A stretch of 64,000 nucleotides of DNA from contig NIVC01000512.1 of assembly GCA_002269645.1 (NCBI GenBank), positions 265,967-329,966 of the forward strand, written 5' to 3'. The translations under genes were made by a program, and so were the position numbers. The notes below the pieces were generated by a model, which saw nothing but the letters and a program-made list of their open reading frames with translations, was not told the DNA's origin and ran no database searches. Shown here one piece after another: positions 4,121 through 51,632 of this stretch. The DNA is from Macrostomum lignano. Taxonomy: Eukaryota. Each line of letters opens with the position of its first letter. Positions within the stretch are counted from its first letter, which is position 1.

Positions 4121-4133
4121 AGCAGCCGAATGT

Positions 4134-21595: not shown

Positions 21596-21627
21596 TCAAA
21601 TAACATTAAAGTCGCGCGACGTTTCAG

Positions 21628-22095
21628 GTGGTCAGCAACGCAAACTGGCGCCGCGACTTTCTCACCTCAGACCCTTACCTGCTGACCTCGGTGTCAATCG
21701 TGGTTAACCGAACCGAGAAGCTCAGCGGCCGGGCGACCAGATTTGGCTTCCTCTATCCCTTCGACCTGTTCATGTGGATGTGCATCCTGGCCACCGTCCA
21801 CGTGGCCGCCGTTGCCGCCGTCATCTACGAGTGGCTCAGCCCGTTCGGCCTGACGCCCTACGGCCGCAATCGGCGCCGGGTGTTCAGCTTCCCAAGCGCT
21901 CTGACCCTCACCTGGTCTGTGCTGTTCTCGCACACGGTGCAGACTAAGTCGCCAAAGTGCTGGAGCGCCCGCTTCCTGCTGAATATCTACGCCATGTTCT
22001 GCCTCGTCTTCATTGCCAGCTACACCGCCAACCTCGCCGCCTTCATGGTCGGCGAAGGCGAAGCGTCTGACATCGTCGGCATCCACGACAGCCGG
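21628..22095 (+). CDS. GRIN3-like: GluN3-like NMDA receptor, M1-M2-M3 exon
   Basis: YEWLSPFGLTPYGRNRRRVFSFPSAL, KSPKCWSARFLLN and SYTANLAAFMVGE...GIHD closely follow vertebrate GluN3A as recalled. Canonical AG/GT. Confidence 0.92.
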
Positions 22096-22104
22096 GTGAG
22101 TCGC

Positions 22105-25102: not shown

Positions 25103-25944
25103 GTGAGAGCAGAGCGTTGCTATGCTATGTGTCAGTCACGACCTTTGCAACTACTAGACATGCGAGATGCGGCAGGTGGTTGCCAGGAGGGTGGGGTTGT
25201 TGTGCGATTCGCAGCCATGAGGGCCAACCCCCAAGGCACAGAGAGTGTACATGCTTGACCATCAGAAAGTCAGGGCTGCTGTACACCCTGTAAGACCGAA
25301 AAATGGAGTCCCTTATTACGAGGAAACGGAAGAAATGAGCCATTCCTGTCTCCGTAGTGATTTTTTTGAGCTAAGCCTGCCTTCAGAGAATTTCTAAGAA
25401 ACAAGATCACCCGTTCTTCCAATTAAAGCGTCAATGCTAAAAATTTGGCATTCGATAGATTGATTTTTCAACTGTCATATTGTTCGTCAGATTGCTGCTC
25501 AGGAGCCCGGCTCTGCTAGCTACTAGCTTAGGCACACACGAACACAGAGAGAGAGAGAATGAGCGAGCAGGGGGATGTTCCAGAGGAGAGGCGGATGATG
25601 GGCAAACACATATTTCCCGAGTCCGCTGGCCTCTCTTCTTCCTGGCGTGCTGTTAAACTGAAAGTTCTTCAGCAGCCTCGACAGCTGGCGGCGGGGGGAA
25701 GGGGCCGACGAAATTCCTGAAGTTTGCCGCCCAGCAGTCGCGGGCCCGAGGCTGGCGGGCATCATGGGAGAGACTTGAGCTGCAGTCGCTGTGTTTGCTG
25801 GGCCTTGCTTTGTTTACCGAGAGCGACAGGTTATGAGGAGTTGGAGCTGGTCAGCTGCCGGGCGGACCGCTGGGTGCTTCTCTGTGTGCTCAACCGGCTG
25901 CTTGAAACTCGACCTTGAATATTTCCGAGTAACTGTGCTTCGGC

Positions 25945-26800
25945 TTGCAGTGAGAATGTGCTGGAGTCACAGTGAGAATGTGCTGGAGAAGGTGAGGGAA
26001 TGTGCTGGAGTCACAGTGAGAATGTGCTGGAGTCACAGTGAGAATGTGCTGGAGAAGGTGAGGTAATGTGCTGGAGTCACAGAGAGAATGTGCTGGAGTC
26101 ACAGTGAGAATGTGCTGGAGTCGGTGAGGGGATGTTCTGGAGTCACAGAGGGAGTGTGCTGGAGTCGGTGAGGGAATGTGCTGGAGTCGGTGAGGGAATG
26201 TGCTGGAGTCGGTGAGGGAATGTGCTGGAGTCACAGAGGGAGTGTGCTGGAGTCGGTGAGGGGATGTACTGGAGTCGGTGAGGGAATGTGCTGGAGTCGG
26301 TGAGGGAATGTGCTGGAGTCGGTGAGGGAATGTGCTGGAGTCGGTGAGGTGATGTGCTGTAGTCGGTGAGGGAATGTGCTGGAGTCACAGAGGGGATGTG
26401 CTGGAGTCGGTGAGGGGATGTGCTGGAGTCGGTGAGGGAATGTGCTGGAGTCGGTGAGGTGATGTGCTGTAGTCGGTGAGGGAATGTGCTGGAGTCACAG
26501 AGGGGATGTGCTGGAGTCGGTGAGGGGATGTGCTGGAGTCGGTGAGGGAATGTGCTGGAGTCGGTGAGGTGATGTGCTGTAGTCGGTGAGGGAATGTGCT
26601 GGAGTCACAGAGGGGATGTGCTGGAGTCGGTGAGGGAATGTGCTGGAGTCGGTGAGGGAATGTGCTGGAGTCGGTGAGGGGATGTGCTGGAGTCGGTGAG
26701 GGAATGTGCTGGAGTCGGTGAGGGGATGTGCTGGAGTCGGTGAGGGGATGTGCTGGAGTCGGTGAGGGAATGTGCTGGAGTCGGTGAGGGGATGTGCTGG
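25945..26800. repeat. 22-bp satellite ending just before the acceptor
   Basis: Unit GGAGTCGGTGAGGGAATGTGCT. Confidence 0.95.
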
Positions 26801-26825
26801 AACCCACCCCCTCAACCACCCGCAG

Positions 26826-26996
26826 AATAAAGTCCGCCTTACGCCCACCAACTTCGCGGGTCCGCTGCTGCTCTTCTGCTTCGGAGTTCTGCTGTCTGGT
26901 GCCACAGCAGCCGCGGAGTTCCTGCTGTACTTTGCCCTGTTCCCCCTGCTGCGCAAGGTCAGGGTGAACCCCGCCTGCTGCCTGCCAATCAGCCAG
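26826..26996 (+). CDS. GluN3-like gene, M4 exon
   Basis: LTPTNFAGPLLLFCFGVLLSG...AEF, hydrophobic M4 helix, phase 0 at both ends. Confidence 0.85.
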
Positions 26997-27184
26997 GTTC
27001 GTGGAGGGTCAGCTCTGGGTCATCCTGATTTAGCACTTCGCATGCACTTTCCCTGGGGGGGGGGTGAGAGATGTTGCCAAATCTGGAGTCAAAATTTACT
27101 TTCTTTATCCATTTTCTTTTGCTTGATGGATTTTCTTAGATGCGTCAGAGATAAACCAATCGAGCGATAGATAGGGCTACGGAG

Positions 27185-27672
27185 AGACAGTGGAAGAGGG
27201 AGGGTGGGGACTAGGGAGAGGAAAAAAGAGAGGGAGATGGAGAGGTAGCTAGGGAGAGGGAAAGGGAGAGGGAGCGAGAAAGGGAGCTAGGGAGAGGGAG
27301 AGGGAGATGGAGAGGTAGCTAGGGAGAGGGAAAGGGAGAGGGAGCGAGAAAGGGAGCTTGGGAGAGGGAGCGGGAGAGGGAGAGGGAGCTAGGGAGAGGG
27401 AGCGGGAGAGGGAGCTTGGGAGAGGGAGAGGGAGAGGGAGAGGGAGCGGGAGAGGGAGCTTGGGAGAGGGAGCTTGGGAGAGGGAGAGGGAGAGGGAGAG
27501 GGAGCGGGAGAGGGAGCTTGGGAGAGAGAGCGGGAGAGGGAGCTTGGGAGAGGGAGCTTGGGAGAGGGAGAGGGAGAGGGAGAGGGAGCGGGAGAGGGAG
27601 CTTGGGAGAGAGAGCGGGAGAGGGAGCGGGAGAGACAGGTAGGGAGAGGGAGCGGGAGAGGGAGAGGGAGAG
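27185..27672. repeat. Polypurine (GGGAGA)n-like tract
   Basis: Nearly pure purine strand with GGG every 6 nt. Confidence 0.9.
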
Positions 27673-28314
27673 GTAAATTGAGTAGCGATGGTCTGGTGAA
27701 GCAGCAAGCTGGCGGACCAGTCCTGGAAAATAATTGCACGATCCGAAGGTGTGATTGAAGATATCTGTGACAGCATGCAATCTAATTGTGTTGTAGCAGC
27801 CCTATGTTTAACTTTCTGGCATTTTGCTACAGGTAATGTAGTAGTGTAACAGAATATTACAATAAAAATGAATACAAAAAGTAAGAGATAGATTATGTGA
27901 AAAAATCAAAGCTCGAATAGCTAATAATTAAAATTTGAATTTGGTAAAGCAAAAAAAACGATGAAAAACGGTCCAAAAACTTCAGCCAATGCTTATAAAA
28001 CTCAACATTTCCCCGGATCCCTGATGCATTTTCATAGCTAATAGCTCAATTCCGATTTCCTATAAATGATCTATTAGCCAACGGATTTTTTTCAGTTAAC
28101 AATTTTCCACCACGTACTTCCTTCTATCTGCCATGTGGATCCTCGAACCTCAGCATTTTTTATGTAGAGAGGATTTTTCTAAATAAGCAGACACCCTTGA
28201 TTTGACTCTTGAAACACGGTGAAACGGTGAAAACACGATTTAGATAGCTTCATGACAAAGACGCGGAATGAAAATGTCTATCTTGCCTACGGCTCTCTGG
28301 AGATTCCCTTGGGG

Positions 28315-28770
28315 AATTCCGCTAGGGGGATTCCGTGGAATTCCAGTAGAGGGTTCTACAAGGGGGATTTCACTAGGGGGTTCCACTATAGGGGGTTACA
28401 CTAGCGGGTTCCACTAAACGGTTCCACTAGGGCCGGGATTCTACAAGGGGGTTCCACTAGGGGATTCTACAAGGGGGTTCCACTAGGGGATTCTACAAGG
28501 GGGTTCCACTAGCGGGCTCCACTAAACGGTTCCACTAGGGGATTCTACAAGGGGGTTCCACTAGGGGATTCTACAAGGGGGTTCCACTAGGGGATTCTAC
28601 AAGGGGGATTCCACAAGGGGGTTCTACAAGGGAGTTCCACTAGGGGATTCTACAAGGGGGTTCCACTAGGGGGTTCTACAAGGGGGGTTCCACTAGGGGA
28701 TTTCACTAGGGAAATTCCAAATGGGGGTTACACTAGAAAATTCTATTAGATGATTCCATTAGGCGGTTCC
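28315..28770. repeat. 26-bp G-run minisatellite
   Basis: Unit CTAGGGGATTCTACAAGGGGGTTCCA. Confidence 0.9.
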
Positions 28771-28901
28771 ATTAGGGAACTCTGCCAGGGTGATTTCTGG
28801 GTAGCTCCCTTCTTGGCACAAGTGTATATGAGTTAGTTCTCGAGCTAGTTTTCCCCGAATGGCCAGGGCCCTAGCAACTCTTTCCCCCAAACGCCTTGCA
28901 G

Positions 28902-28984
28902 AGGGTCTACCGCCACCTGGTCCGCTACCGGGAGGCGCAGGAGAGGCGGCGGTGCAATCGCGACGCGCTGCCTGTGGCGCTCAG
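28902..28984 (+). CDS. GluN3-like gene, cytoplasmic-tail exon
   Basis: ISQ|RVYRHL resembles GluN3A TSQRLHRA. Sites ttgcag| and ag|GTGAGT. Confidence 0.75.
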
Positions 28985-29289
28985 GTGAGTGGCAGCAGTT
29001 GTTGTGACAGCAATGTGTTTTCTTTCGAATTATAGCCTGTCAAGTTGACGGGCAGCGCCAGCTAGGCGAGTGCAACTTGGCCATTGATGGGCCTCTTCAG
29101 AGTCAGAGAATTTCTACTCTCATGTTCAGGAGCTGCTGCTTTCCAAACACTACACTGCAAAGCATATCGATACCTCCGCAGCCACTCTACACTTCGTCTC
29201 TTATGCCTCTGTTATGCCCTGCACTGTAACCTCTTGGATGTCTCATTTATCACTGTCTCCACTTCTCATACTTGACCACTTCTCTTAAC

Positions 29290-29690
29290 GTCAACTCTCT
29301 CCCCATCTCACATCTCCTCTCCCTCCCTCTACACATCTTCTCCCTTCTGCACATCTCCTCTCCCTTCTTCTACACATCTCTTCTCCCTTGTTCTGTACAT
29401 CTCCTCTCCCTTCTTCTGCACATCTCTTCTCCCTTCTACACACCTCATCTCCCTTCTTCTACACACCTCATCTCCCTTCTTCTACACACCTCCTCTCCCT
29501 TCTTCTACACACCTCATCTCCCTTCTTCCAAACATCTACTTTCCCCTTCCCTCCCTACCTCTACACATTTCTCCCTTCTACAAATCTCTCCCTCCTTCTA
29601 CACATTGCTCCCCCCGTTTCTCATCTACTATTTCTCACCCATCTCCTATGCCTCCGTTTCTCATCTCCCCTCCCTTCCCTCTTCCCATTT
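29290..29690. repeat. CT-rich degenerate repeat
   Basis: CTCCTCTCCCTTCTTCTACACA-like units. Confidence 0.85.
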
Positions 29691-30186
29691 ACGTATATAG
29701 ATACTAATTTGTCAGCGAAACATCACTAATGTGAAATAAAAAACGGTTCAAAAAACCCAGGCTAGAATTTTGTAACAGAAAAACACAAATAAAAGTGGAA
29801 TTGACTTTTCAGCCAAGCTGCTGAGGAAGTAAATCCCACATTTAGCAAGCTCCCAGTAGCGATTCGTGAATTGGATTGCCCGGTTTCCTAATGGTCTCTG
29901 ATGAGGCTGCGACTGCGAAGCTGGGAAAGTACTGGACAGGGGAGAAGGGAAGTTCGAGGGGAAAATTGAAATCTGTAAGTTTCGAGCAGATCAGCGCTGC
30001 GGTTAGAAATTTTCTTTCGGACAAGTCAAAGCCAAAGCGGCTGCTTTGGCCGGATAATTCGAGATGATAATTGCAATTTAAGACACGTGCCGAGACTTGG
30101 GTGCAAATTTGTGGCCCACATTTTGGTGCAATTCTATCACTAAACTGTGGGACTTCTGTGTGACACTCATGCAGCTGAGGTTCGAT

Positions 30187-30838
30187 GCCATTCTCTGATT
30201 AAGCTGTGAGACTTCAGTGCCATTCTCTGATTAAGCTGTGAGACTTCAGTGCCATTCTCTGATTAAGCTGTGAGATTTCATTGCCATTCTCTGATTAAGC
30301 TGTGAGATTTCATTGGGTAAGAGACTAATTCGACACTCTAAGTCACGGTAAGAGACTAATTCGACACTCTAAGTCACGGTAAGAGACTAATTCGACACTC
30401 TAAGTAACGGTAAGAGACTAATTCGACACTCTAAAGTAACGGTAAGAGACTAATTCGACACTCTAAAGTAACGGTAAGAGACTAATTCGACACTCTAAGT
30501 ACGGTAAGAGACTAATTCGACACTCTAAAGTAACGGTAAGAGACTAATTCGACACTCTAAATAACGGTAAGAGACTAATTCGACACTCTAAAGTAACGGT
30601 AAGAGACTAATTCGACACTCTGAACTACGGAAAGAGACTAATTCGACACTCTGAACTACGTAAGAGACTAATTCGACACTCTGAACTACGTAAAGAGACT
30701 AATTCGACACTCTAAAGTAACGGTAAGAGACTAATTCGACACTCTGAACTACGGAAAGAGACTAATTCGACACTCTGAACTACCGTAAAGAGACTAATTC
30801 GACACTCTGAACTACCGGAAGAGACTAATTCAACTCTA
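30187..30838. repeat. ~32-bp satellite that switches to its complement at 30316
   Basis: GCCATTCTCTGATTAAGCTGTGAGACTTCAGT up to 30315, then GGTAAGAGACTAATTCGACACTCT..., which is the exact complement read in the same direction. Confidence 0.95.
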
Positions 30839-31017
30839 AAGAAGAACCTAACCGAAGACCCCGACAACCTATGAGCATATTAACCTTGGTTTTTTAATTT
30901 GAATCGACGGAATTTCTTCAAAGTTATGAACTCGGTACGAAAGCTTATTCGGTATGGTAGCGATGTCACACTTAGCGTATTAAAGTGTTAAAGGTAGTTG
31001 TATTTAGCGAGCGCGTC

Positions 31018-31466
31018 CGACGTTTTCATGTGGTCGCTGTCCCTGTCAGACGAGTACAGCGACCCTCGGCTAGTGAGCTCCTCTGGGCTGACGTGCTGGT
31101 AGTCGTAGTAGTCGTTGTCGTCGTCCTGCGTCGGCGTTACTACGATAACTTGTTATAGCGACACGTCTGTCTGGACCTCACGTCGTAGTCGAGTGTCGAC
31201 CTCTCGCATCTGGTCCGGTAGTCCCGGTTCTCGACGGTCAAGTTGGCCCTGTACGCGGTGTACGCGCTCGCTTAGCGCTTAGACGATTCTCTAGCCCTTT
31301 AAGATCACGCTGCGAACGTTGCAAGCTCCCGTTTAGGTTCCGCCTGTAGCTCAGGCTCGACGACCTCTGTCGGCGAAGTTGCCCGCCGCGGTCGCCGTCG
31401 CCGGCCCCGTATCTCGACTGCGTGTCCTTAGACGACCTGAGCGATCGGTTTGGCGAACTGAAAATT
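31018..31466 (+). CDS. Probable last exon of the GluN3-like gene, readable only on the complemented sequence, with probable indels
   Basis: The complement gives cgcgcag|g ctg caa aag tac (RLQKYTSDRDSLL, in phase 2), a long frame ...HQQQQQDAAAMMLLNNIAVQTDLE...RERIANLLRDRE, and a third frame ending KPLDF*. Confidence 0.6.
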
Positions 31467-31974
31467 ATTAATTAAATAGCGTCATTAATTAAAAGAGAAC
31501 TGGTACAAACGCTTGAGCTAGTATTTTAGTATGAATATCTCATACGGTGAAGAACGAGCGAATCTCCGATCCCCCGCTAAGAGGGTTACTTTTACCATGG
31601 ATCCGGTTTTTCGCGGTCAGTATTAAGTCTCAGCAACGTCTCCATTGTGTCAATTTAATCCTTTCTTCACTGAGATCTGTTGACTTTGCTACTCTACAGA
31701 GCCATTCGATTTTCAGCAGTCTCAGTGTATTCTAGTTAATTTCGAAAAATAACAGACGCTGAGACCCCGCGAAGATCTGAGACCCCGGCATCTGAATGAA
31801 CATAGACTCCACACGACATGAGAAAAATGCTAGGACGTTGAGTGCACTACGTGAACAGTAGAGTGGCAGCTTAACGTCAGTAAATTTAGTAATTTCTCAG
31901 CTAGGTCACTGCAATCTCAGTGATTCATAGTACAACCGTTACTGCATCGCTAAGAACGGTGCCATTGTAAAAGT

Positions 31975-33512
31975 TACCCAGATGACCCAATCCCCGCTAA
32001 GAGATGTGACCCAGTCCCCGCTAAGAGATGTGAACCAATCCCTGCTAAGATGTGACCCAATCCCCGCTAAGAGATGTGACCCAATCCCGCTAAGAGATGT
32101 GACCCAATCCCCGCTAAGAGATGTGACCCAATCCCCGCTAAGAGATGTGAACCAATCCCCGCTAAGAGATGTGACCCAATCCCCGCTAAGAGATGTGACC
32201 CAATCCCCGCTAAGAGATGTGACCCAATCCCCTAAGAGATGTGACCCAGTCCCCGCTAAGAGATGTGACCCAATCCCCGCTAAGATGTGACCCAATCCCC
32301 GCTAAGAGATGTGACCCAATCCCCGCTAAGAGATGTGAACCAATCCCCGCTAAGAGATGTGAACCAATCCCCGCTAAGAGATGTGACCCAATCCCCGCTA
32401 AGAGATGTGACCCAGTCCCCGCTAAGAGATGTGACCCATTCCCCGCTAAGAGATGTGACCCAATCCCCGCTAAGAGATGTGACCCAATCCCCGCTAAGAG
32501 ATGTGACCCAATCCCCGCTAAGAGATGTGACCCAATCCCCGCTAAGAGATGTGAACCAATCCCCGCTAAGAGATGTGACCCAGTCCCCGCTAAGAGATGT
32601 GACCCATTCCCCGCTAAGAGATGTGACCCATTCCCCGCTCTAAGAGATGTGACCCATTCCCCGCTAAGAGATGTGACCCAATCCCCGCTAAGAGATGTGA
32701 CCCAGTCCCCGCTAAGAGATGTGACCCAATCCCCGCTAAGAGATGTGAACCAATCCCCGCTAAGAGATGTGACCCAATCCCCGCTAAGAGATGTGACCCA
32801 GTCCCCGCTAAGAGATGTGACCCAATCCCCGCTAAGAGATGTGACCCAATCCCCGCTAAGAGATGTGACCCAATCCCCGCTAAGAGATGTGAACCAATCC
32901 CCGCTAAGAGATGTGACCCAATCCCCGCTAAGAGATGTGACCCAGTCCCCGCTAAGAGATGTGACCCAATCCCCGCTAAGATGTGACCCAATCCCCGCTA
33001 AGAGATGTGACCATCCCCGCTAAGAGATGTGAACCAATCCCCGCTAAGAGATGTGACCCAATCCCCGCTAAGAGATGTGACCCAATCCCCGCTAAGAGAT
33101 GTGACCCATTCCCCGCTAAGAGATGTGACCCAATCCCCGCTAAGAGATGTGACCCAGTCCCCGCTAAGAGATGTGACCCATTCCCCGCTAAGAGATGTGA
33201 CCCATTCCCCGCTAAGAGATGTGACCCAATCCCCGCTAAGAGATGTGACCCAGTCCCCGCTAAGAGATGTGACCCAATCCCCGCTAAGAGATGTGACCAT
33301 CCCCGCTAAGAGATGTGACCCAGTCCCCGCTAAGAGATGTGACCCATCCCCGCTAAGAGATGTGACCCAATCCCGCTAAGAGATGTGACCCAATCCCCGC
33401 TAAGAGATGTGACCCAGTCCCCGCTAAGAGATGTGACCCATTCCCCGCTAAGAGATGTGACCCAATCCCCGCAAAGAGATGTGACCCAATCCCCGCTAAG
33501 ATGTGACCCAAT
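31975..33512. repeat. 24-bp satellite inside the complemented block
   Basis: Unit CCCCGCTAAGAGATGTGACCCAAT as written (corrected: GGGGCGATTCTCTACACTGGGTTA). Confidence 0.95.
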
Positions 33513-35019
33513 CTAATATGTCCGTTCATGTTCGTAACACTCGTCGCGCCGGGGTTCGGACTTACGTCAATATTAAAGCTGGCGTTTGTTTTTATTTAGA
33601 GCTACGTTTTTACTTCAGTCTTTCTTTTCGAAAAAGCAACTTGAAGGTAGGACTGTCAAGCAGTTGATTCCTTCGAGAGAAAGTTCACGTCTGTCTTCAA
33701 AACTATAATATAATAAATATAATGATATCGATCTTTCTCATGTGTTCGTCGTTAGTTCTTTCGTTGTCAATATTCTGAGACGATATGTCCTTTTTGTCGT
33801 TTTGTCCACTAGACTATTTTTATAAATATTATAACCAAACCTTCTTTACAGGAACGACATTGAATGAGGTACAAACGCCTAATTATAAAAATGTGTTCTT
33901 TTACACGTCGTTGAGACTGCGTTCCTATTTTAGTGTCTTTCCGACAGAATATCTTGTTGCCTCTTAGAAGAGTCTTACGTTACACCTCTGTCCTCGCTCT
34001 CGCTTATAGACTCGGGTCAATGGCCCTGCTACTCTTGGTTACTCGTATCTCGAGTGAACTCCTTACTTGCTATCAATCTACTATTTTCGTTACGTTATTT
34101 TACTCTGTTCTAGACTACTTTGTACAAAACTTAAAATGATGAAACATATTGTTTAAACTTTTCGTGGCCACACACATTTAATTTTGTTTGTGCCCGTCCT
34201 CCATACTGTAGACGACTTCCATTGACCCCGATACCGCCGATTAGTGAATAATAATATAGTATATATGACCCCGACGCCACTTATTTGTTTGTGTCATTTT
34301 TATAATTTTGAGAAGTTTGAGATGACGTCGCGCTTTGGGTCTTCATCATAGATGTCAAACACTGTTACTTTTACACAGTTAAATTTTGTTTTATTGTCTA
34401 TTGAGACTCGTTCGTGGCTAGGTCGACTGGTCTGGGTGTCTTTGCGTCTGTGTTCTTCTGTGTGTTCTTCCTTTTCGTAAGCGAGGTTTTCCACTAAATT
34501 TATTTATAAGAATGCTTCTCACCTTCTTATTTATAGTTAGATACATTATTTTATTTGAACGGAAATATATATCGCACTTTCTCGCGTCCTCCGCTAATCT
34601 AATGTGCTTCGTCTATACGCGCGTTTTTTACTTATAAACAAAACGAAATAGTGAAGATGATTATCATCGTGGTTTAAATATTTTAATATTTCAGTGAACA
34701 AACTATAAGTATACGGTTTATCAAAGTTCCTATCAAAACGCCTAGAATTTTGTGACGCTCCATGACACGAATAATGTGTGAACGTGTACGTTAGAGAGAC
34801 CGGTAACTAAAGACGAATTGCAGCTATGAAACAATACAGTACGTGAAATCCCTTTAAAGGCTTTTCAGAATACCGATGTAAGATGTGGTAGACACCAAAC
34901 ATAATTGGTAACGAAAATTATTTGTGTTGGGTTCTCACACTGTCAGCGATTTCACACTTTTTGTTGCTTTGTTTGTTTTTAGTTTCGACGACCTCGTGTG
35001 CTTGTCTCCCGGTTAACCG

Positions 35020-35850
35020 AGTGACGTAAGGTCACGACCTGACTCGCCCGTCGTACCAGACCCGGCCGAATTTAGAACATGTCCGGAAGAAGGTCGCCGT
35101 GACGCACGTGGTGTAAGAGGCCAATAGTTGCGGTATTTAAGCCGCCGTAAACGGCGCGCCGCTGTCGCCGCAATCGCTCCGACTCCTCCGCAGCGGCGGT
35201 CTCTTGCTCCTGCTGTTACTGCTGCCGCCCCAGTGCCGGTCGTCGACAACGCCCAGAAGGCCCGGCGGCGGACGTGGCGGCGGAGACGGAGGCGGCGGTC
35301 AGCTTTGCCGGCCTCCTCCTTTGCTTTTGCTCCTGCTTCGGCTGTCCGCTTTGCCGCTCTGCCGCTTCGGCGGTTTTTTACGCGGTGAGGGCCGCGGCTG
35401 CAACTGCGACTCGCCGTTCCGATTTGACCGCGTCGTCTGACCTCCGCCGCGCCTCCCGCCCCGTGACGTCGACATGTACACGTCTCGGACGACGACGACG
35501 ACGCCTGCGTTAGCGCCGCCTAGTTCGCGAACCAAACGGGGTTAACCACAGCTCTTAGGTTGTCGCGCTGAGACTACGACGCCTACGACGACCGACCGGA
35601 GCTACAGTTAAAGCTTAAGCAGGAGCAGTCGTAGCAGGCGAACCGACAAGAGGCGTCGAAGTCGGCGTCGCCGCCGAAGCCGTTGTCGCGCACCGTCCGT
35701 TAGCCGGTCCGCCGCGTGTCAAACTTAGGCCCGCGGTCTGCTGTCGCACTCCGACTGTTCGTGTCTCAGGTCGAGCCCTAGCGTCGCGAGATGCTACGGC
35801 TCCCGCAGGAGCGGAAACATTTGATAGTGATGAAGCAGCGGTCCGACGTA
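35020..35850 (-). CDS. 276-aa C-clamp zinc-finger protein, read right-to-left WITHOUT complementing (minus strand of the corrected sequence)
   Basis: Uninterrupted ATG-to-TGA ORF of 831 nt: MQPGDEVVIVYKGEDALGIVERCDPELDSVLV...[35 protein letters not shown]...MQ*. Matches the ZNF395/ZNF704/SLC2A4RG C-clamp KCRKVYGME.RD.WCTACRWKKAC.RF. Confidence 0.9.
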
Positions 35851-36130
35851 CGATCTAACTTATTTAAGAATGATAGTTACGTGGAACCGAATCCGTACTT
35901 TACGATATCGACTTAGCCGGTCTAACCCGACTTTTTCCAACCTATTACTTGTATTGAGGATATTTTTCTTGAATGATAGGTAAAAATGTTTGATGAATTC
36001 GGATTCTGTTACTTATCGATTTACTGTAGAAACCGTTCGTCACCTAACCGATACCTCTTGGGTACGTGACCAGACGAACTACATTGTTTACATTGTTGTT
36101 TAACTGTTGGTACTACTGTACGTGTACTTC

Positions 36131-38336
36131 ATGTTCCCGACGAATTATTTATTCAAACACCTTTTTCTGTGAAGACTTATACGAAGGTGAATTTTTTAAT
36201 GAACGTAAATAGGGGTGAATTACTCTGAAAAGTTGTATCAAAGATCTATCTAACTACGTAAAGAGGTAGGATATCTTGGTACGATGTTTTGTCAGGGAAT
36301 TAAGGTGGATTCACTGTCGAAGGTCGAAACGAAAGTTCCGGAGAGGTTCGAGGAACGCACTCAGTTTCGTGAAAGGGAACTCTAACAAGAACTAGAAACC
36401 TTTCTTCTTCAGTCGACCTCGTTCCAACCCGTTTATCCGACCCATACCGTCGTCTGAGTCAACTCAACTATGGTCTTTGAGGATACAGTGGGACCGAACC
36501 ATTCGATCTTGTAACAATACCATGTCCTTTTACCGTACCATAGATGATAAACCGGTGAGAACTAACTCCTTGACGTCGTGGATCCCGTTCGTTTGTGAAG
36601 TCATGTTTACTGGTCAGTGACACCGTGAAAGAAACTCATCTTATCCGTCGTCCTATAGTATGATGGTCTTCTTCTGATGACAATACTGGAACGGTTATGA
36701 AGAGAGTGTATCCTTAAACTATCTCCTTAGGAGAAGTTTTCGTTAGGTGACGGATGAGATCCTAAAACATAGATCCAGTATTTTCATTTGGATTCAAAGT
36801 AGGGGATAATCCTATAACAGATGGTTAAAACTTCGAGGACGTAGTTAAATAACTCGTACTTCAAACGTTTGAGTTGTGTTCGAACGTAGATCCAACCCAA
36901 GTTCACTATCCCGTAGATCGTACATCTGTGAAAGGAGTACGGATCTACTAGTACGTCCTATCTTTACCACGAACTTAGACTTTAGGGTTGTACAAAGAAC
37001 TAAAGTACTTGATAGTAAATAATTAGAAGTAACTAGAAACCTGTGTTCGGTGACAATATAAACATTATCGGTTTAAATCTATCAGAAACACAAATAATAG
37101 TAGATCGAGGTCCGTCGATCTTGTTTTAAACGGTTTGGTGAACATGTGGTAACAGACCCTGACCCCACTCCGAAATAGTAGATTACGAAAAACTTCATAG
37201 ACGTTCGTGAGTTTCCGTCTAACCGGTTCAGTTTTAACTTGTTCCTAACGTTGAACAGACAGTGTAACTTGTAACAGTTAACGTTCCGTTCCAGATCTCA
37301 GTATAGTGAAAAAACTGGTAACGTAAAATCGTAAAATCAATCTCCGACTTTTAACTGTATTTTCTACAGTTAAAGATATATTTTTCTTTACGGTTTATTT
37401 TATAATAAAATAAACATGTTTTCTTTCAATCTAAAAGGTGTTTGACTAATCCGTCACGAATAAATCGACCGTGACCGGTTTATTCAAACGATGATAAATC
37501 GACCGTCAGGACGGGGTGACGGTCATTTTATTCGAACAGTGATAAATAAATCGGTCGTTAGGACGGGGTGACGACCAGTTTATTCGAGCAGTGATAAATC
37601 GGTCGTTAGGACCGGGGATTACCGGTGCGGTAATATATATAAATAAATTCTATAAATTTGAAACCCGTTATGTTTCATCCATATCACTTATATTTAGTTA
37701 CATCTAAGTCATGTTAAATAATAAACGGAAATTCAAACAAATTAACAAAGACCTTCAGAACGTATAAGGCTTTTAATAAACATCGTCGTCTTTTGTATAT
37801 TTGTTTAATTTTTAATTAATACGTATAAAATGAAAGTGAAATTAGAGATTTAGTTTTGGTGAGTAATTTCGGTTTTTGGTGATGTTTGTGGAAATAGTTT
37901 TTTGAGGTTTTAACATTATATTTATTAATCGAACATCATACAATTTAATAATTAAATTCCAGTACTGTTCGTCACGCATATATATTTATATATATTTACA
38001 TAAAACTGATCGTACGGTAACCCCTTAAGGAGATCATTATCACTCACTTGTCCCTTCTTGGATTGTGGTTTAGGGAACCGCGTCCAGTTGTCCTTTACAC
38101 CACAATCGGTTCTAACGGCCGATTTATCACTGCTCGAATAAACTGGCCGTCACCCTGTCCTGACGGTCGATTTATCACTGTACGAATAAACTGGCCGTCA
38201 CCCCGTTCTGACGGTCGATTTATCACTGTCCTAATAAACTGACCGTCACCCCGTCCTGACGGCCGATTTATCACTGCGCGAATAAACTGACCACGACCGA
38301 TTTATTCGTGACGGTTAAATAATTCGTTGGGAACAT
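36131..38336 (-). mobile_element. Degenerate mariner relic inside the complemented block, with a MITE in its right TIR
   Basis: Corrected ends TA-CAAGGGCTGCTTAATAAAT... and ...ATTTATTAAGCAACCCTTG-TA. Decayed transposase with an HTH (QSAFECLQILQKAL...VYKWF) and PYPAYLPNLAPADFFFPKIKNNLKGKCF. About 1.34 kb without the MITE. Confidence 0.8.
37451..38314. mobile_element. MITE/foldback element (~860 bp) with subterminal tandem repeats and AT-rich core
   Basis: CCGTCACGAATAAATC at 37451 and its reverse complement GATTTATTCGTGACGG ending at 38314. The repeat arrays at both ends are inverted. Confidence 0.75.
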
Positions 38337-40817
38337 TAATACACTTTATCAAAAAATTTAAACCTTGGGTTAAAATTTTTCATTTTATTTATGAGACAAG
38401 CTTTTTCTTTAACGGTACTTTATTACCCCATCCGGATTGAATTCTCGACCTATTTTTATTTTCATCCGGGATTCTTGATCTTCATTATGATAATGATCCG
38501 GATTTGTTGACTAGACATTTACAGTGTATACAAACAAAACACACCGAACGTGTAACATTTGAAACAGGTTTAAGATAATCCGGATCCGGATCATGAAGAA
38601 CAGTCGACACTGTTTATAGGATCAAAGAAAACCAGCTAAAAGCAATAATTTTTTAAATCTGGAAGACTCCGAATAGTTCTGTTATGCTTCCAAAATAACC
38701 ATAATGATAGATTTCCTTTATTTCCTAATCTGTTTTTCAGTAATCTGCTTTGTTGTGTGGGATAGATTTCCTGGCCTAGCATATCTGAATCTAATTTGCC
38801 AACTGCTCGAAGCCGTATATTTGATTAATAGGCCTATCTATGACGAGAAATAACTTATTTTAGCATGTCATAGCTTAGTTTTCGCAGAATCGCAGTAGCT
38901 AAGGGATTGTCTTTAAGGCGGGCAAAGAACAATACCAGAGCACGCACGCACGCAGAGAAGCGTGCGTTAAGCAAAGAACAGCTAGCATTTGATAATTTAG
39001 TACTGACTGTTGTACTGTAAGCCTACTGTCATCTGTTGTACGCTCGCTTTACAACAAAATGATTTCAAAATTTCATTATTGAGATACACGTAAAACAAGT
39101 TTTAATATAACTTTAAGTATTAATTTGGTTCAATTAGATACGTTAGATTATTAAATAAGGTAAAAATTTGAATGCCAATTTTATCTAAAATATATATAAA
39201 GTAGCTGTGTCCCACTCGTGAGGCCATTCTATCCTCGGAAAACACGGCCTTACAGACCAGTAATGAATGCAGCGCTGCATGTAGCTTTATTTTGTTGTAT
39301 TGAAAACATTTGCGCACGCATGCACCAGCCTTGTATAGAGAATACAAATGACTCCAAACTCCCATTTTAGGCCTAGTTTTGTGGATAATTGGAAGTAAAG
39401 ATTGTAAAGAATCAATAAAGATTGATTTAAGGATTTTACTAAAGTTCAACAAGGTCGATAAAGTGCTACTAGGCCTATATTGAATTTTTTGTTTTGAAAA
39501 AAATTGATAGGCCTATATTGAATTTTTTTGTTTTGAAAAAAATTGATAGGCCTATATTAATTGAATTTTGAAATATTATAAACTGTTAAATTTAATTTTA
39601 TACATTATATGTATAATTGTTTAATTATTATTAAACTAAATAATTTAAAATCATAAAATGTAGGCCCCTATAATACATACAACTTAAGACAAAAAAGTCT
39701 CTTCATCTTTGTATAAATTGGTAGGCCTAGAACTTTTAAATTAGGCCTATGCTTTGTCTAGGCCTGTATCAATGAAATATGATAGGCCAAAGATTTTTTT
39801 ATTGTTATTTAGGAGAGAAGGGAAGGCAATCTTTTGGAATACTATCGACAACAAGTAATGTGATAATCTGCTAATCAAATTTAACAACTGCACTTGATAA
39901 ACCAATGTTTATTGTACTTTATAAGCCAATGATTATTGCACTTGATAAGCCAAGGATTATTGCACTTGATAAGACAATTATTATTGCATTTGATGTGTAA
40001 AGGATTATTTTACTAGATGAGTAAAAAGATTATTGAATTTGATGGTGCATCAATTATTGCACTAGATGATCAGGGGATGCCTGATATTGGGAAAGCGAAA
40101 GGCTGGCTCTTAGGAGGGGGTACATGCCATCATGCTTGGGCACAACCTTGGGATTCATTTGGCCGTTTCAATTGGCAACATACACATGTAAGTTGCTATT
40201 GGACAGAATAGTAATCACGTGACTGCTCTCAGCCAATAGCGACTTACATGTATGTGTTGCCAATAGAAACGGCCAGGTGATTCCTAAAGTTTTGCATGTA
40301 TGCATGCCATCTTGGAGTATACTATCTGGGGGATGCTTGCCATTGTATTTTGGGGATTTTGCTATTGTATTTGGGGGGGGGTACTTACTTTTGTATTTGG
40401 GTATATGTTTGCTATCTTGGAGGAAGGGGGTAAGGATACTTTTCTGCTTTTTTAATAAATACCAACATCAAAAAGTCTATGAAAGCTTAGTATATGCCTG
40501 TGTATACTAGTATATGCCAGAATGTAGCTTTGAGATAAATTTTGTATGCTAGTATACACTAGCCAATGCTTTGTATGCTTGATTAATCTTGAATTTTCTG
40601 CATTATCGACCTTATTGCATAGGTAAGCCTTGTAAAGGATTATTCTCCTTTAGGTTAGTAAAAGCAAAATCAAGTTTATAGAAATATAAATTTCAATACT
40701 GCATAGACACAAGCTATTGGCTTCTTTACAAACTAGCAATCATTATCTAGAACATTTTATTTAAACTTCAATTGAGTAGAGCAAGATTAATAGCATTTTG
40801 CTGGCTCATGCTTCCAG

Positions 40818-43800
40818 ATGCGCAGTGAATCTTGGTTAATGCTGCTTTGTGCTCTGTTCTGTTCGGCATTTGTGCCAGCCCAGTTCACGCAAGAGTGCCG
40901 TTCCGATACCTACCCACCCCCAAGCAGCTCAGAGGTGGAGTGGTTTGATGTCAGCTTAGACGAAGCTCCAATTATTCGCTGGCGCCATGTGGTAGCGCGC
41001 CGTCAATCCCAGATACGCGACCTACTGTTGCAGTTTAAAAATTTCATTCGGCAACTGACCGGCTCGAGTGTGTACTTTAACCTTGTTGCGCGGTCTCTGA
41101 CTCTTATTGCGCCCACTGTGCCGCAGCCCTACCAGGACGAAATGGTTGGCATTAGCACAGTGACTGGCATTCCATTGGGCGAGATTTTGCTTTACAATAT
41201 CTTCTACGAAGCCACTAACCTGTGCACGTCTGTGTTGGCTGAGGATTCCAAGGTAGATATAATATTTACTATCTTCTTAGTGAGACTTTCTGCTCAAGTC
41301 TGACAACACAACAAAAACAACAAAATACGCTGTCAGGATGGCAAAAGTCAGCGTCGCAGGGCGCGCTTCATGGCTTGGGCGCGAACAAAGGCCGCGCCAC
41401 CGGCAGTGTCCGGGGCGCCGGCGTCAGCCAGCAGACAGTCGACGTAACGCCGAGTTCGCGCTTGACCTCGCCGGTAGGGTGCCTGCAGTGTGAACAGCAG
41501 CACCTGCACCGGCTGTGGGCAGTACGACTCGGCGCAGATGAGATGGCCTGCGAGCTGGAGTCGCCGACGGCGCAGTAGATCGCTTGGACGTGGCAGGCCA
41601 GCGCGGCGATAGAGTGCCGCGTTGGTGACTCGCTCGACGCCGATGTTGAAGGCGGCGCGCAGCAGGCCAGCGTGCGCCGCATCGACTTGCTGAGACTTCT
41701 CAATTCTAAGACCCATTGAAAACGATACTCTACGGCCCCAGAGTCACTATAGAAGCGTCCGAGAGTAGTTTCAGAGTCGCAGACAATAAAGCATCTCAAA
41801 TTGGCTCTTAGGCCATCCTTTTTGGTAACTTGCGCCGTGCCGTGACATCTCGTCGTTTTGGACTCGTCTAGAGTCACTTCTTTCGTATTTACCTGTGTTA
41901 TCTGCAACAACTCTGGGGTGACGCAATTGACGGAAATGGCCCGAATGCCCGATTTTTTTAAGGGTGGCCCGAATTTATGTGTAGCTAATGGGCCTGATTT
42001 TTCCTCACTAATTCTTATTCTCTATTGACGAAGTCGTGAGAAGGACAGCCTTGCAGCCTTGGATTGCTGACCATCAGGGCACTTGTTGTATCACAATCGT
42101 GTCTGGTGGCTAAAGGTTGGGCTGCTGCCAGTCTGTAGGTCTCACCAGACTCAAAGAATTTGTGCGCCAGTGCCTATGCTGTATGCCGCTGGCAGCTGGA
42201 GGAGGAAAGATGATAATAACGTAAGAAAAGGGAGAAGCTGGAGAAGAGTCACGTCAGATATCCAAAATGAAAGTAGAGCCAGCAAGAAATACACCGACTT
42301 GGAGAAGTTGGTTCAGTAGACGCCCGAGCAGATTAGGGAGAAGCTGAAGCAGAGCAACTGTTGTTGGAGACGACAAAGGCCAAGGAAGCAAAAAAGTGCG
42401 GCCCGAAAAAACGGCTACCCCTCCCTCCCACAACTGATCGGGAGCTTTTTTGTGCGTATTTTTATTATTAATTCTCATTCTTATACCATGTACTCGTTAT
42501 TGATCATCGTTTCCATCTTGTCAGGGAGTCCTTTACCACGCTCGCAATCTGGATTTCGGTCTCTTCTTTGGCTGGGACAAAGCCAAAAAGACTTGGCTCG
42601 TCACCGAGTACCTTCGGCCAACCATTGTGAACATCCGGTTCAAGAAGTCCGGCCAGACGGTGTTCATGTCCACCCACTTTGCCGGCTATGTTGGCATTCT
42701 GACCGCCCTGAAGCCGGGCAGGTTCAGCCTCACCGTGAATTCTAGAAATAGTCTCGATGGCAGCTCGACTCTCGGCATCATCGAATGGATTCTGGGCAAG
42801 AGGGACGCCGTCTGGATGGGCTTCCTAACTCGCAGAGTCATGGAGACGGCCGACAGCTACGCCCAGGCCAAGCAGATGCTGACGGGCACCAAGATGCTGG
42901 CACCGGCCTACTTCATCTTGGGTGGCAACAGCACTATGCAGGTTCGTGAGTTACTAAAATTAGAATAATCGAAAGAGTATCCGATTTTATTAGTGACTGT
43001 ATTGTCAGATAAGGCTAGCTAGGCTTCCAAGGGGCTCTATGCACTGCTAGGTTGACTCAGCTGCAGAGGGGGGGGTCCGAGCATCCGGATACAACAGGGA
43101 AAGCCCCGGATACACCCCGGCAAGCACAGGCAGCTGGTGTTGCCGTGTCCGCAGCGCGGTCCCCCTCCGGGGAGTCCAGGAGGTGGATGGTCACTCGCCC
43201 GGTAGCTTTTAAGTAGCGGACGAGCTGGCAGAGATTCTCGGGCCTGAAAACGTCGAAGAGGTCCGAGTTTGTGCCGAGGTAGATGAGCCTGTCCTGGGTA
43301 AAGACGGGGCATTTGCAGGTGAAGTGCTCCGCATTCTCAACACCTAAGAGGCAGAATGGACATTCCTCACTGCTGATTTTTCCGTGGAGGTGACGATGAC
43401 TTGCAAAACAGCCATGACCCGGGAGGGCCATGGTCACCGCCCTAGTGTCGCTGCGGCTTTACATAGGTTAGATAGAACTTTATAATTGCTCACACAACCC
43501 TGCGGATTAGATCGAGTCTAAGAATTCTGTAGTCTAAACTTTATATATTTATAAATATTTGATATTCAAAAGTTAAAAGTCTCGAAATTACACTGTCCGA
43601 CAAGCCAAATCTACTACAAATCAAATGATTCTAATCTCCTCCCGGCTGCACTGGCGCAGGGCTGCATCATCACCCGGTCCCGAAACGCCGCCATCGACGT
43701 GTGGGAGCGCTCGGCGGCCGCCAACCACACCTGGTACCTGCTGCAGACCAACTACGATCACTGGAAGCCACCGTTTGTGCTTGACGACAGGCGAACCCCC

Positions 43801-43980
43801 GGCAACAAGTGCATGATGGCCAAGGGTCAGGCTAGCATGGGGTTCAAGGAGATCTTCAATGTGCTGAGCTCGATTCCTGTGCTCAACAAGCTCACAACTT
43901 ACACGGCTCTGATGCGGGTGGACACGGGAGAGTATCACAGCTACCGCCAGACCTGCAAGGACCCGTGTCCGATTTGGTAG
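40818..43980 (+). CDS. ASAH1: Acid ceramidase paralog 1; exons 40818-41252, 42525-42941, 43660-43980
   Basis: Signal peptide, YEATNL-CTS autocleavage Cys, [42 protein letters not shown]-terminal CKDPCPIW. All joins are phase 0. Confidence 0.92.
41300..41716 (-). mobile_element. 3' fragment of an RTE-like non-LTR retrotransposon in ASAH1 intron 1
   Basis: LRAAFNI...TNAALY...RRRRLQLAGH post-RT motif, followed by a TTG-rich tail. Confidence 0.7.
43020..43445 (-). mobile_element. 3' fragment of a CCHC-bearing LINE in ASAH1 intron 2
   Basis: GHGCFASH...CPFC...ENAEHFTCKCP zinc knuckle typical of I/R1/Jockey-group ORF2 ends. Confidence 0.65.
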
Positions 43981-44267
43981 ATTGGCATTAAACTGACTCA
44001 ATTTGTGCTTGTTTTATAAAGCAGATTTTAACTGCTTTGGTGCGTGGCTTTCAATTTTGTTTTTTAAATTCCATTTTCACTAACTTCCTGCATTCAGAGT
44101 TTTTTAATGCACTTTTACAATATTTTCTATCTTCCGCAATAGTCAGTTGTCTTTGATCGCTTTTAAAAAATATAATATTTTGTAAGCTCGATTGAAGCTT
44201 TGCTTGTCACTATAATAAACTATTTTGTTGATCCTGATTTTTTAATACTTGCTAGCTGATTCAAAGA

Positions 44268-44830
44268 CTTAGGGAGCGGAGAGGCAGATTCAAGGACTTA
44301 GGGAGCGGAGAGGCAGATTCAAGGACTGAGAGAGCGGAGAGGCAGATTCAAAGACTGAGGGAGCGGAGAGGCAGATTCAAGGACTGAGGGAGCGGAGGGG
44401 CAGATTCAAGGACACTGAGGGAGCGGAGAGGCAGATTCAAGGACACTGAGGGAGCGGAGAGGCAAATTCAAGGACTGAGGGAGCGGAGAGGCAGATTCAA
44501 GGACTGAGAGAGCGGAGAGACAGGTTCAAGGACTGAGGGAGCGGAGAGGCAGATTCAAGGACACCGAGGAAGCGGAGAGGCAGATTCAAGGACACCGAGG
44601 GAGCGGAGAGGCAGATTCAAGGACTGAGGGAGCGGAGAGGCAGATTCAAGGACACTGAGGGAGCGGAGAGGCAGATTCAAGGACACTGAGGGAGCGGAGA
44701 GGCAGATTCAAGGACACTGAGGGAGCGGAGAGGTAGATTCAAGGACACTGAGGGAGCGGAGAGGCAGATTCAAGGACACTGAGGGAGCGGAGAGGCAAAT
44801 TCAAGGACTGAGGGAGCGGAGAGGCAGCGG
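44268..44830. repeat. 29-31-bp minisatellite
   Basis: Unit GAGGGAGCGGAGAGGCAGATTCAAGGAC(AC)T. Confidence 0.92.
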
Positions 44831-44967
44831 AGGGAACTGGGGAAGTAGCCAGACAAGGAGGAATTTAGACAAACTAACAACTAGTGGATGCTTGTGCTAA
44901 ATTATTAAATCTATTATTTCCCGATTGCAGCTCATTGATTTGTCCACTGATTGCATTGCCAACAAGC

Positions 44968-46398
44968 ATGAAGCTGACGCCCGAGCTTATACAGAACTCG
45001 GTGCAGACCACTAATCCGCTGGGTGACCGCGAACTAGATCTGCGAGGATACAAGGTGGCTTTGTTAGAGAATCTCAGCGCTACTCTGGACCAGTTTGATA
45101 CCATCGACCTCACAGATAATGAGGTATATATAATGCTTCCATTGCAACACTATCATTGATGTACTCTCAGCTTGATGCATCACTCTCTGTTCGTTGTTTG
45201 GCCTAGCTGATATGCATGTACTCTCCAATCTCACTTTCTCTTCCTCTTAACAAACTGCCGGAACGGAGAGACAGATTCTTCCTCTAACAAACTGCCATTC
45301 TTCCTCAAACAAACTGCTATTCTTTCCCTAACAAACTGCCATTCTTCCTCAAACAAACTGCTATTCTTTCCCTAACAAACTGCCATTCTTCCTCAAACAA
45401 ACTGCTATTCTTTCCCTAACAAACTGTCATTCTTTCCCTAACAATCTGCCATTCTTCCTCAAACAAACTGCCATTCTTCCTTCAACAAACTGCCATTCTT
45501 CCTCTAACAAACTACCATTCTTTCCCTAACAAACTGTCATTCTTTCCCTAACAATCTGCCATTCTTCCTCTAACAAACTACCATTCTTCACCTAACAAAC
45601 TACCATTCTTCACCTAACAAACTACCATTCTTCACCTAACAAACTACCATTCTTCACCTAACAAACTACCATTCTTCACCTAACAAACTACCATTCTTCA
45701 CCTAACAAACTACCATTCTTCACCTAACAAACTGCCATTCTTACTGCCCTAACAAACGCATTCTTCCCACGAATCGGCAGATCCGCAAGCTGGACGGCTT
45801 CCCCCACCTGCCCCGGCTGGCAAACCTGATGCTGAACAATAACAAGGTGATGCGCATTGGCGACGGCCTTTCAAGCAGCCTGCCGCGCCTGTCGACCCTC
45901 CTGCTGACCAACAACTGCCTGCAGGAGCTGGCGGACTTGGAGCCCCTGACCGCCCTGAAGCGGCTGCGCTTCCTGTCCCTGCTGAAGAACCCCGTCTGCA
46001 GCCGGCGCAACTACCGCCTACACGTGGTGCACAAGCTGCCCAGTCTGCGCTTCCTCGACTTTCGACGCATCACCGACGCCGAACGTCGACAAGCGGCCGC
46101 GCTGTTTACCTCCGGTGGCGTCGGGGATGTCGCCGATAAATCGGCGGCGAGCTTGAAGTCCAAGCCTGCCAAGACTTTCACGCCCGGAGCGCCAGTGCCG
46201 GCGGCTGCTGCCGCTGCGTCGGCGCCTGTCTCGGCAGCCGGCGGCCCGACTTCCGCTGACCTGCTGGCTGTGCGCGAGGCGATCCGGCGGGCAAACACCC
46301 TGGACGAGGTGGACCGGCTCAACCGGCTGCTCACTACAGGAAACTATGCCGGCTTTGCTAAGACTGGCGGCGGAGGCGGCGGAGAGAAGCAGGCCTGA
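44968..46398 (+). CDS. SNRPA1: U2 snRNP protein A'; exons 44968-45123 and 45781-46398
   Basis: MKLTPELIQNS..TNPLGDRELDLRGYK...DQFDTIDLTDNE|IRKLDGFP, leucine-rich repeats, YRLHVVHKLPSLRFLDF, C-terminal AIRRANTLDEVDRLNRLL. Confidence 0.95.
45240..45765. repeat. ~22-bp intronic satellite in SNRPA1
   Basis: Unit TACCATTCTTCACCTAACAAAC. Confidence 0.9.
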
Positions 46399-50280: not shown

Positions 50281-51632
50281 TACATCGGCTGTCCGGAAAG
50301 TCGTGAGATTGTATTTAAAAAAACCAGTCAGAACTATCAGAAAACACGATAACAGCACTAGTTGGTAATGTAATCTCCCCTTGCGTTGATTACAGCTTGG
50401 CAATGGTCAACGAGTCGCTGAACCTCTCTTTTCAAGCAATCTTCGTCAAGGCCTCTTGCCCATTGCAATGCAGCTTCTCGAACTTCATTGTGGTCGCTGA
50501 ACACTCGCCTGGAGAAATCAGTCTTCATCTAAATGAACAAAAAATGGTCGCACAAATTGAAGTCTGGGCCGTAAGGACTCTGAAACACCAGCTGAACTCC
50601 ACGGGACTCCATGTACTGCTGCACAGAACGGGCTACGTGAGGTCGCGCATTGTCCCACTGCCAAAGAACATCCGACAGATGAATTGGCCTTGACCTGAGA
50701 GTACGCCATAGATCTCCGGTGTGCCGAATGAACTCAACTATGCCATTTGCATCAGCAGTTTGCTTTGGGGCTGTGGATTCAATGGAGAAGCGCTTGTTTG
50801 GAGTAAAAGCAACCAGAAGCATTGTCTTTGCATTGCCGACTGAGTGCCTGACAACCTAGGGCCGATGATCCCCTTGGCCAAGCCAGCACCTGTTGTTTTG
50901 CTTTGTGCCAGTGTTGTTCAGGTACTCCCACGTCTCATCTTCCACCACGTACTTGTCGCAAAAGTTTTTCATGCCCTCGTAAAAAAGCCCGCGAATTTGC
51001 TTGGCACAATTGATGCGAGCAGTCTTGTTCTCCTCGGATAGAGCATGCGGAACCCAGACAGCAGAAACGTTTCGAAGGTGCAAATCCTCAGTCACAATTT
51101 CGCGCACTGTTGTTTTTCCAACTTCCAAAAAGTCAGCGAGGTCTCGGACACTAACTTTTGGATCCTCTTCAATAAGAGCTCGGCAGGTTTCGATCAGTTC
51201 CGCTGTCCTTGTTGACCGTGGCCGGCCAGTCCGAGGAGCTGAGACCGGGGGAAATGCTTCGTCACGGAACTTCGAATACCATCTGTAAACCGTTGACTGA
51301 CCTGGTGCAGCATCTCCATAAACTTTGAGCAGCTCGTCATGGCAGCTGATAGCGGAGATTCCAAGACGGTATCTAGCATAGGCATAACCCTGGAAGTCTT
51401 CCATTTTGAAGAACTCGCTGTCAAAATTTTCAAGCTTGATCACCGCGTTGCATTTGTTATTGAGCACTTTATACTGAGCTCGCCCCTGCCCCCCAATTTT
51501 GCTACTAGAATAACAAGAATTTTCACCATTGACATATATGAGTCTATTATTGAAAATTTATGTGTGCCACGTCAACAGCTTGCTGCTTTCTTGCTTAATT
51601 GACACATTCTCATGACTTTCCGGACAGAAGTA
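50281..51632 (-). mobile_element. Mariner-type transposon with frameshifted transposase
   Basis: Imperfect TIRs (CTGTCCGGAAAGTCGTGAGA at ~50289, TCTCATGACTTTCCGGACAG at ~51608). Transposase has an HTH, WVPHAL, EDETW, WDNARPH and SPYGPDFNLCD, with a frameshift near 50860. Confidence 0.88.

Follow-up and report, generated by a model that had tools for sequence, protein, structure and literature searches.

Chromosomal inversions and inversion misassemblies appear as discrete internal segments with two sharp breakpoints, in which the content is otherwise intact and genes crossing a breakpoint are disrupted. The same features characterize a block of 8,457 nt at positions 30316-38772 of a 64,000-nt stretch of the Macrostomum lignano contig NIVC01000512.1 (positions 265,967 to 329,966, forward strand; assembly Mlig_3_7, GCA_002269645.1). 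This whole stretch is referred to below as the window, and positions follow its numbering unless a contig is named. An inversion, however, both reverses and complements its segment, leaving inner genes readable on the other strand and giving a minus-strand match to a reference, whereas in the block the order is kept, the bases are complemented, neither strand yields a match, and all inner genes are unreadable. Orientation errors made at database submission, which produce reversed-only or complemented-only entries and are known mainly from short Sanger or amplicon records, resemble the block in that half of reverse-complementation has been applied and similarity to homologs is lost until the other operation is added. 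Such errors affect whole short records, whereas here an 8.5-kb interval with natural flanks lies inside a 407-kb long-read reference contig. The reversed-not-complemented controls of synthetic regulatory genomics also provide a likeness, serving as a composition-matched null in which composition is kept and biological information is destroyed; these are designed and synthesised on purpose, whereas the block sits in an assembly presented as natural. A literature phrase search for reversed-not-complemented sequence returned deliberate synthetic controls only, and no report of such sequence inside a long-read reference contig. The evidence set out below points, with high probability, to an in-silico artefact in the public assembly.

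A complement-only block with exact ends

The interval 30316-38772 is the base-wise complement, with order kept, of natural M. lignano sequence, as seen by alignment to a sister contig that carries the same locus. This 28-kb locus (L001), located on NIVC01005020.1 of the same assembly (GCA_002269645.1), contains the annotated gene copy Mlig021442g2 and was used together with two further sister contigs, L002 and L003, the latter examined by exact junction search only. As written, window 25467-30315 corresponds to L001 20399-15570 and window 38773-44827 to L001 7080-1066, and the intervening interval 30316-38772 corresponds to L001 15569-7081 after complementation. Complementing 30316-38772 in place, which gives what is here called the restored window, produces a single colinear alignment of 19,431 columns to L001 over 25467-44827, with 98.6% identity and both junctions spanned. 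The complemented block on its own matches L001 at 99.3% identity from its first to its last base (block 1-8457, blastn), whereas the block as written yields no blastn high-scoring segment pair (HSP) against L001 and L002 on either strand (word size 11, E<=1e-5). A first-pass annotation, made from the letters of the window, had described the block as a complement and not a reverse complement, and matches to the three independent sister contigs are indeed obtained only once the block is complemented. The left end proposed there, 30316, is exact; the proposed right end, 38700, has to be moved 72 nt further, to 38772.

Colinearity after complementation, together with the lack of a minus-strand match, shows that the block is neither an inversion nor a plain reversal. 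Specifically, a true inversion predicts a minus-strand match to the sister contigs, and blastn of both strands gives no HSP; plain reversal in place is ruled out because the complemented block keeps the order and direction of the flanks and the tandem array at its left end is in phase only when complemented. The same comparison bears on whether the block might be a genuine feature of the genome, either a real mirror segment or a true inversion. Nothing speaks for this beyond its presence in an assembly, DNA being physically able to take any sequence. In templated synthesis and strand rejoining, antiparallel 5'-3' polarity is kept, and a real rearrangement gives the reverse complement. No known mechanism of replication, repair, recombination or transposition copies in parallel polarity, and an identity of ~99-100% to comp(B), the complement of the natural segment B, over 8.4 kb cannot be convergence. 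Because replication, repair, recombination and transposition all act antiparallel, the block is non-biological.

Polarity-sensitive k-mer statistics provide a second line of evidence, drawn from the composition of the sequence. The pairs CG/GC, TA/AT and CA+TG/AC+GT swap under complementation alone or reversal alone and do not swap under true reverse-complementation. Outside 30-38 kb, CG is rarer than GC and CA+TG exceeds AC+GT in every 2-kb bin (28 of 28), and TA is rarer than AT in nearly all of them. Within 30-38 kb, CG exceeds GC in all four bins, reaching 101 against 5 in bin 36001-38000, and both AC+GT over CA+TG and TA over AT are observed in three of the four, the exceptional bin (32001-34000) consisting mostly of a 24-nt tandem array. 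Moreover, each k-mer was given a log-odds score relative to its own reversal, with strand-symmetric training on the flanks; the most negative stretch of this score spans 30315-38615/38631 at k=2, 3 and 4. Per 1-kb bin, this score is positive in all bins outside the block; inside, it is negative in all but one for k=2 and 3 and in all for k=4. With 500-nt bins and leave-out training, the mean is +31.5 outside the block (standard deviation 16.8, n=219) and -31.7 inside, placing the block ~15 standard errors from the flank mean, and the only inside bins near zero are those of the 24-nt array. Applied to the window alone, the polarity score finds the left end with an error of no more than 1 nt and the right end with one of ~150 nt. 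That CpG/GpC and the other polarity-sensitive k-mer biases are mirrored, not equilibrated, further opposes a genuine genome feature, which is hardly conceivable.

No second mirrored block was found when the window was searched with the polarity score, and the ~120 kb of the assembly examined contains one. The lowest bins outside the block (21.2-22.5 kb) were considered as a second block and rejected, being tandem repeat beside a normally oriented glutamate-receptor exon. The 39-nt and 22-nt tandem arrays on either side of this exon have the lowest polarity scores outside the block.

At base resolution, both junctions become continuous upon restoration. In the restored window, the right junction matches L001 exactly for 40 nt in both directions, and the left junction is identical to L001 for 40 nt before and 26 nt after, beyond which the array copies differ. 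A 35-mer from the restored right junction occurs once in each of L001, L002 and L003, while its as-written version occurs in none of the three. Alignment to L001 reveals no N, overlap, duplication or loss at either junction. The 32-nt array cut by the left junction is reported by Tandem Repeats Finder (TRF) as two arrays with mutually complementary consensus units, and it stays in phase across 30315/30316 only after in-place complementation of 30316 onward. The right junction lies within a cluster of the palindromic motif TAGGCCTA, with four copies of ATCCGGAT inside the block (38430-38584) and seven of TAGGCCTA just outside it (38829-39742), in agreement with the first-pass reading that TAGGCCTA is written as ATCCGGAT in the block. 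Additionally, this junction splits the palindromic AGGCCT as A/GGCCT (38772-38777). Both ends of the block are locally repetitive or palindromic, the left in a tandem array and the right in a palindrome and motif cluster; this may hint at an alignment-driven operation or be a coincidence.

Probable presence in the public record and proposed origin of the block

The record NIVC01000512.1, in the version contained in the collection consulted, carries the mirrored block. Window 30821-53980 as written equals NIVC01000512.1 296,787-319,946 at 100.000% identity over 23,160 nt, with 0 mismatches and 0 gaps, a match that crosses the right junction and covers 7,952 nt of the block. The window is distinct from L001, which spans only 28 kb and differs by indels, and from the two contigs with the annotated copies g1 and g3. 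This locus (L004) was fetched around the acid-ceramidase homolog PAA81805.1, located on NIVC01000512.1 (407,097 bp) of Mlig_3_7. From the locus range and the ascending protein accessions, we infer that the block occupies about 296,282-304,738 of the contig. In the gene index of NIVC01000512.1, a source separate from the DNA store, ceramidase, LRR_9 and cofilin genes are called, and no ZNF704_C gene is listed where the restored open reading frame (ORF) lies. The claim that the block is invisible to annotation is thus borne out, the ZNF704_C gene being uncalled here and annotated on all three sisters. Exact look-up of two flank ORFs returned no record.

These observations bear on the possibility that the complementation was made downstream of GenBank, as a deliberate control or by accident, so that the locus store shares the change and the public record is natural. 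Altered data had been named as an option in the first-pass annotation, and alteration of the window alone was at first favoured here, then dropped on the match to NIVC01000512.1. A downstream change would fit the seemingly arbitrary placement of the block ends (the left one inside a tandem-repeat unit, the right one in unique sequence), the absence of any N, overlap or coverage signature, and the fact that no known assembler behaviour yields such blocks. Against it, a locus fetched separately by protein look-up is identical to the window across the block and the right junction, and the ZNF704_C gene is missing from the deposited annotation at precisely this place, with the neighbours and the three sister copies annotated, an omission that a late change would not cause. 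Downstream alteration is therefore considered improbable, and the 100% identity of the window to NIVC01000512.1 over 23 kb favours an error in the public record.

For an in-silico artefact of contig NIVC01000512.1 in Mlig_3_7, the underlying event would be one in which each base of a finished consensus stretch was swapped for its complement and the left-to-right order was retained. The same string would arise if a piece in reverse-complement orientation were reversed but not complemented. The operation would have acted on already assembled sequence, after consensus and before annotation, and not on reads or contigs before joining. Mlig_3_7 was generated with Canu 1.4, Pilon 1.20 polishing using Illumina and RNA-seq reads, and SSPACE 3.0 scaffolding (PMC5730564). 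Each of these stages, or an undescribed custom or submission step, is a candidate for the operation, and one speculative route would be a reverse-complement routine working on 2-bit-coded sequence, of which only the complement half, an exclusive-or (XOR) operation, was executed.

A different route to the same letters would be reads or a contig that underwent reversal alone, either ahead of assembly or in the course of assembly, scaffolding or gap filling, and were then joined to normal sequence; a mis-converted read set or one gap-filling read would be examples. Since rev(rc(B)) = comp(B), flipping a minus-oriented piece by reversal only gives an identical string, and the left end of the block falls in a tandem repeat, a common place for contigs to end. 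Mirror-image sequence, however, shares no overlaps with normal reads, so that base-perfect colinear joining would be impossible, and neither junction shows Ns, duplicated bases or lost bases. With a third contig used for polarisation, window-specific indels number 2 in 6,080 nt of the block, compared with 2 in 2,715 nt and 3 in 5,245 nt of the flanks; because indels in the block are as rare as in the flanks, the block represents a multi-read consensus and not a pasted raw read, its consensus-level accuracy being unlike that of a raw PacBio read. A haplotype switch at the junction was sought and none was found, divergence from L001 being unchanged there, and at both junctions the contig is otherwise unbroken relative to a near-identical sister contig. 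Of the first-pass proposal of a mis-flipped contig or read, the artefact stands, whereas a raw-read origin is disfavoured by the consensus-level accuracy and the seamless junctions; a flip before joining is very unlikely. Seamless, base-exact junctions and the lack of overlap between mirror sequence and normal reads make an in-place operation on finished sequence the simplest explanation.

Several points weigh against an in-place artefact in the public assembly. We know of no Canu, Pilon or SSPACE step that emits complement-only segments, and of none that obviously edits an 8-kb internal interval. In addition, L004 begins at window 30821, 505 nt inside the block, so the left junction falls outside that comparison, and the change might, with low probability, sit in the consulted copy of NIVC01000512.1 and not in GenBank's own. 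With these points counted, an in-silico artefact in contig NIVC01000512.1 of Mlig_3_7 is still considered very probable.

Sequence hidden in the block and neighbouring features

Restoration brings out an intact single-exon ORF (Table 1), a fourth and unannotated copy of Mlig021442 that encodes a DUF4772/ZNF704_C zinc-finger protein of the ZNF395/ZNF704 family. Its 276-aa translation is identical to BOX15_Mlig021442g2 (PAA46165.1; 100% identity, 100% coverage), a hypothetical protein that carries the precomputed Pfam entry PF27556 (ZNF704_C/DUF4772), and three other contigs bear annotated copies (g1, g2 and g3). By tblastn, no match is obtained in the window as written, and 100% identity is obtained at 35850->35023 once the window is restored. 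The ORF of 831 nt with a known domain that had been noticed at first pass is accordingly confirmed in position and strand. A local Pfam scan of the 276-aa ORF gave no match, presumably because the recent PF27556 model is absent from the local Pfam copy; the domain call is taken from the precomputed PF27556 of the identical protein. Compared with ZNF395/ZNF704/SLC2A4RG-type proteins, the C-terminal Cys-rich motif is 65-81% identical to arthropod ZNF395-like proteins, in matches over the final ~10% of the query, with E=4e-5 to 3e-6, whereas the remainder is low-complexity and Macrostomum-specific, only the short C-terminal domain being conserved.

At 31018-31466, the restored sequence contains an open frame that is plausibly a 3'-terminal exon, presented as a candidate only and not claimed as a gene. 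In the sister contigs, 149 codons of this frame are free of stops. In this copy it is broken by two single-G deletions relative to both sister contigs, near 31078 and 31317, which are residual long-read homopolymer errors that survived polishing. The 149-aa translation has no homolog in a search of 5.8 billion proteins and only sub-threshold Pfam matches, and the exon is without annotation on the sister contigs. The splice acceptor and coding exon proposed earlier are plausible, an AG and an open terminal frame being present. As also noted at first pass, the block has no sensible ORFs as written, the long ones being confined to the 24-nt repeat or to GC-rich sequence. One of these, a 269-aa as-written ORF, gives a Pfam Ice_nucleation match (E=8e-9) that was rejected as spurious, reflecting the periodic low complexity of the 24-nt repeat.

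The restored block further contains a 2.2-kb mariner-like element that, from its sequence, appears as a relic. Its ORF is broken, and similarity is clear only with a frame-stitched translation: the hand-stitched transposase matches Mos1 (PDB 3hos; E=4e-13) and SETMAR (E=4e-9), and in Pfam it gives weak, sub-threshold matches to Transposase_1 (0.013) and DDE_3 (0.054). A Pfam scan of the unstitched restored frames, with stops read as X, gave no match for the relic, and no TA target duplication is seen. The stitched Mos1 match and the ~29-nt terminal inverted repeat agree with the mariner terminal repeats and transposase first described from the complemented letters.

Table 1. Coordinates of features in the window; "restored" denotes strand after in-place complementation of 30316-38772.
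Feature	Position	Strand	Remarks
Reverse transcriptase (RVT_1) ORF	842-2053	+	mobile element
Protein-primed type-B DNA polymerase (DNA_pol_B_2) with Endonuclease_7 domain	4373-7606	-	mobile element
Ionotropic glutamate receptor channel (Lig_chan) exon	21610-22097	+	ends at GTGAGT donor
32-nt tandem array, unit TGCCATTCTCTGATTAAGCTGTGAGAYTTCAK	30186-30841		cut by left junction 30315/30316; TRF
Putative 3'-terminal coding exon	31018-31466	+ (restored)	AG acceptor 31016-31017, stop 31464-31466
24-nt tandem array, ~64 copies	31983-33513		inside block; polarity score near zero
831-nt single-exon ORF, 276 aa + stop, intact	35020-35850	minus (restored)	readable only after restoring
Degenerate mariner-like element	36122-38344	minus (restored)	visible only after restoring
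Transposase relic with stops and frameshifts	37196->36227	minus (restored)	tblastn coordinates
Terminal inverted repeat of mariner-like element, ~29 nt	36122-36151 / 38316-38344
Internal inverted 48-52-nt tandem arrays of mariner-like element	37473-37617 and 38115-38289
Cluster of palindromic motif TAGGCCTA	38430-39749		straddles right junction 38772/38773
Tandem acid-ceramidase genes (ASAH1/NAAA-like, CBAH + NAAA-beta)	40794-43977 and 52338-56000	+
Second mariner-like transposase ORF, normally oriented	50472-51557	-	Pfam HTH_48, HTH_32

The flanks as written behave normally, with Pfam matches to RVT_1, DNA_pol_B_2, Lig_chan, a Mos1-type HTH and NAAA-beta. The polymerase ORF at 4373-7606 suggests an origin from a Polinton/Maverick-like or similar element. 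The second mariner-like ORF and the relic inside the block share ~20% identity. The first ceramidase, PAA81805.1 (389 aa), and the second, PAA81808.1 (397 aa), are ~80% identical, and an LRR_9 gene and a cofilin/ADF gene lie between the two ceramidase genes. Unusually dense minisatellite arrays with periods of 13-32 nt occupy 25954-29605 and 44267-45768, a density consistent with the tandem-repeat content of 15% reported for the M. lignano genome (PMC5730564).

NIVC01005020.1, the contig that holds L001, is a near mismatch-free duplicate of the window from 25.5 to ~41 kb, with the differences outside the arrays nearly all 1-nt indels; beyond 41 kb, within the compared range 25467-53700, divergence rises to ~10-20 mismatches per kb. 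NIVC01005020.1 thus has the look of a redundant or haplotig copy within the assembly, which fits the report that the assembly is larger than the genome (PMC10733133).

Meaning for the Macrostomum lignano reference

The block is not real as a genomic feature and, as an artefact, has no biological significance; its value lies in an erratum and a quality-control case. The error escapes the usual checks, with base composition, GC content and repeat periodicity all preserved, and complement-only content cannot be recovered by six-frame or both-strand searches. An easy screen is nevertheless at hand, either through the log-odds of k-mers against reversed k-mers or by complementing an assembly and aligning it to transcripts or another assembly.

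It is possible, though rather unlikely, that the block is one case of a recurrent software fault, in which a reverse-complement routine sometimes applies only one half of its operation to an internal interval. Such a fault would sit in a widely used tool of the period (Canu 1.4, Pilon 1.20, SSPACE 3.0, or a submission or format converter), and mirror blocks would then be scattered in Mlig_3_7 and other public assemblies, silently removing genes from annotation and read mapping.

Two public assemblies exist for M. lignano, ML2 and Mlig_3_7 (PMC10733133). Mlig_3_7 serves as the reference of the species, in which NIVC01000512.1 hides the fourth copy of Mlig021442, a putative terminal exon and a mariner relic, and 8.5 kb of this contig are unmappable for any read or transcript. 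Copy-number, expression and subgenome analyses may be distorted in consequence, in a neopolyploid genome where paralog counts matter.

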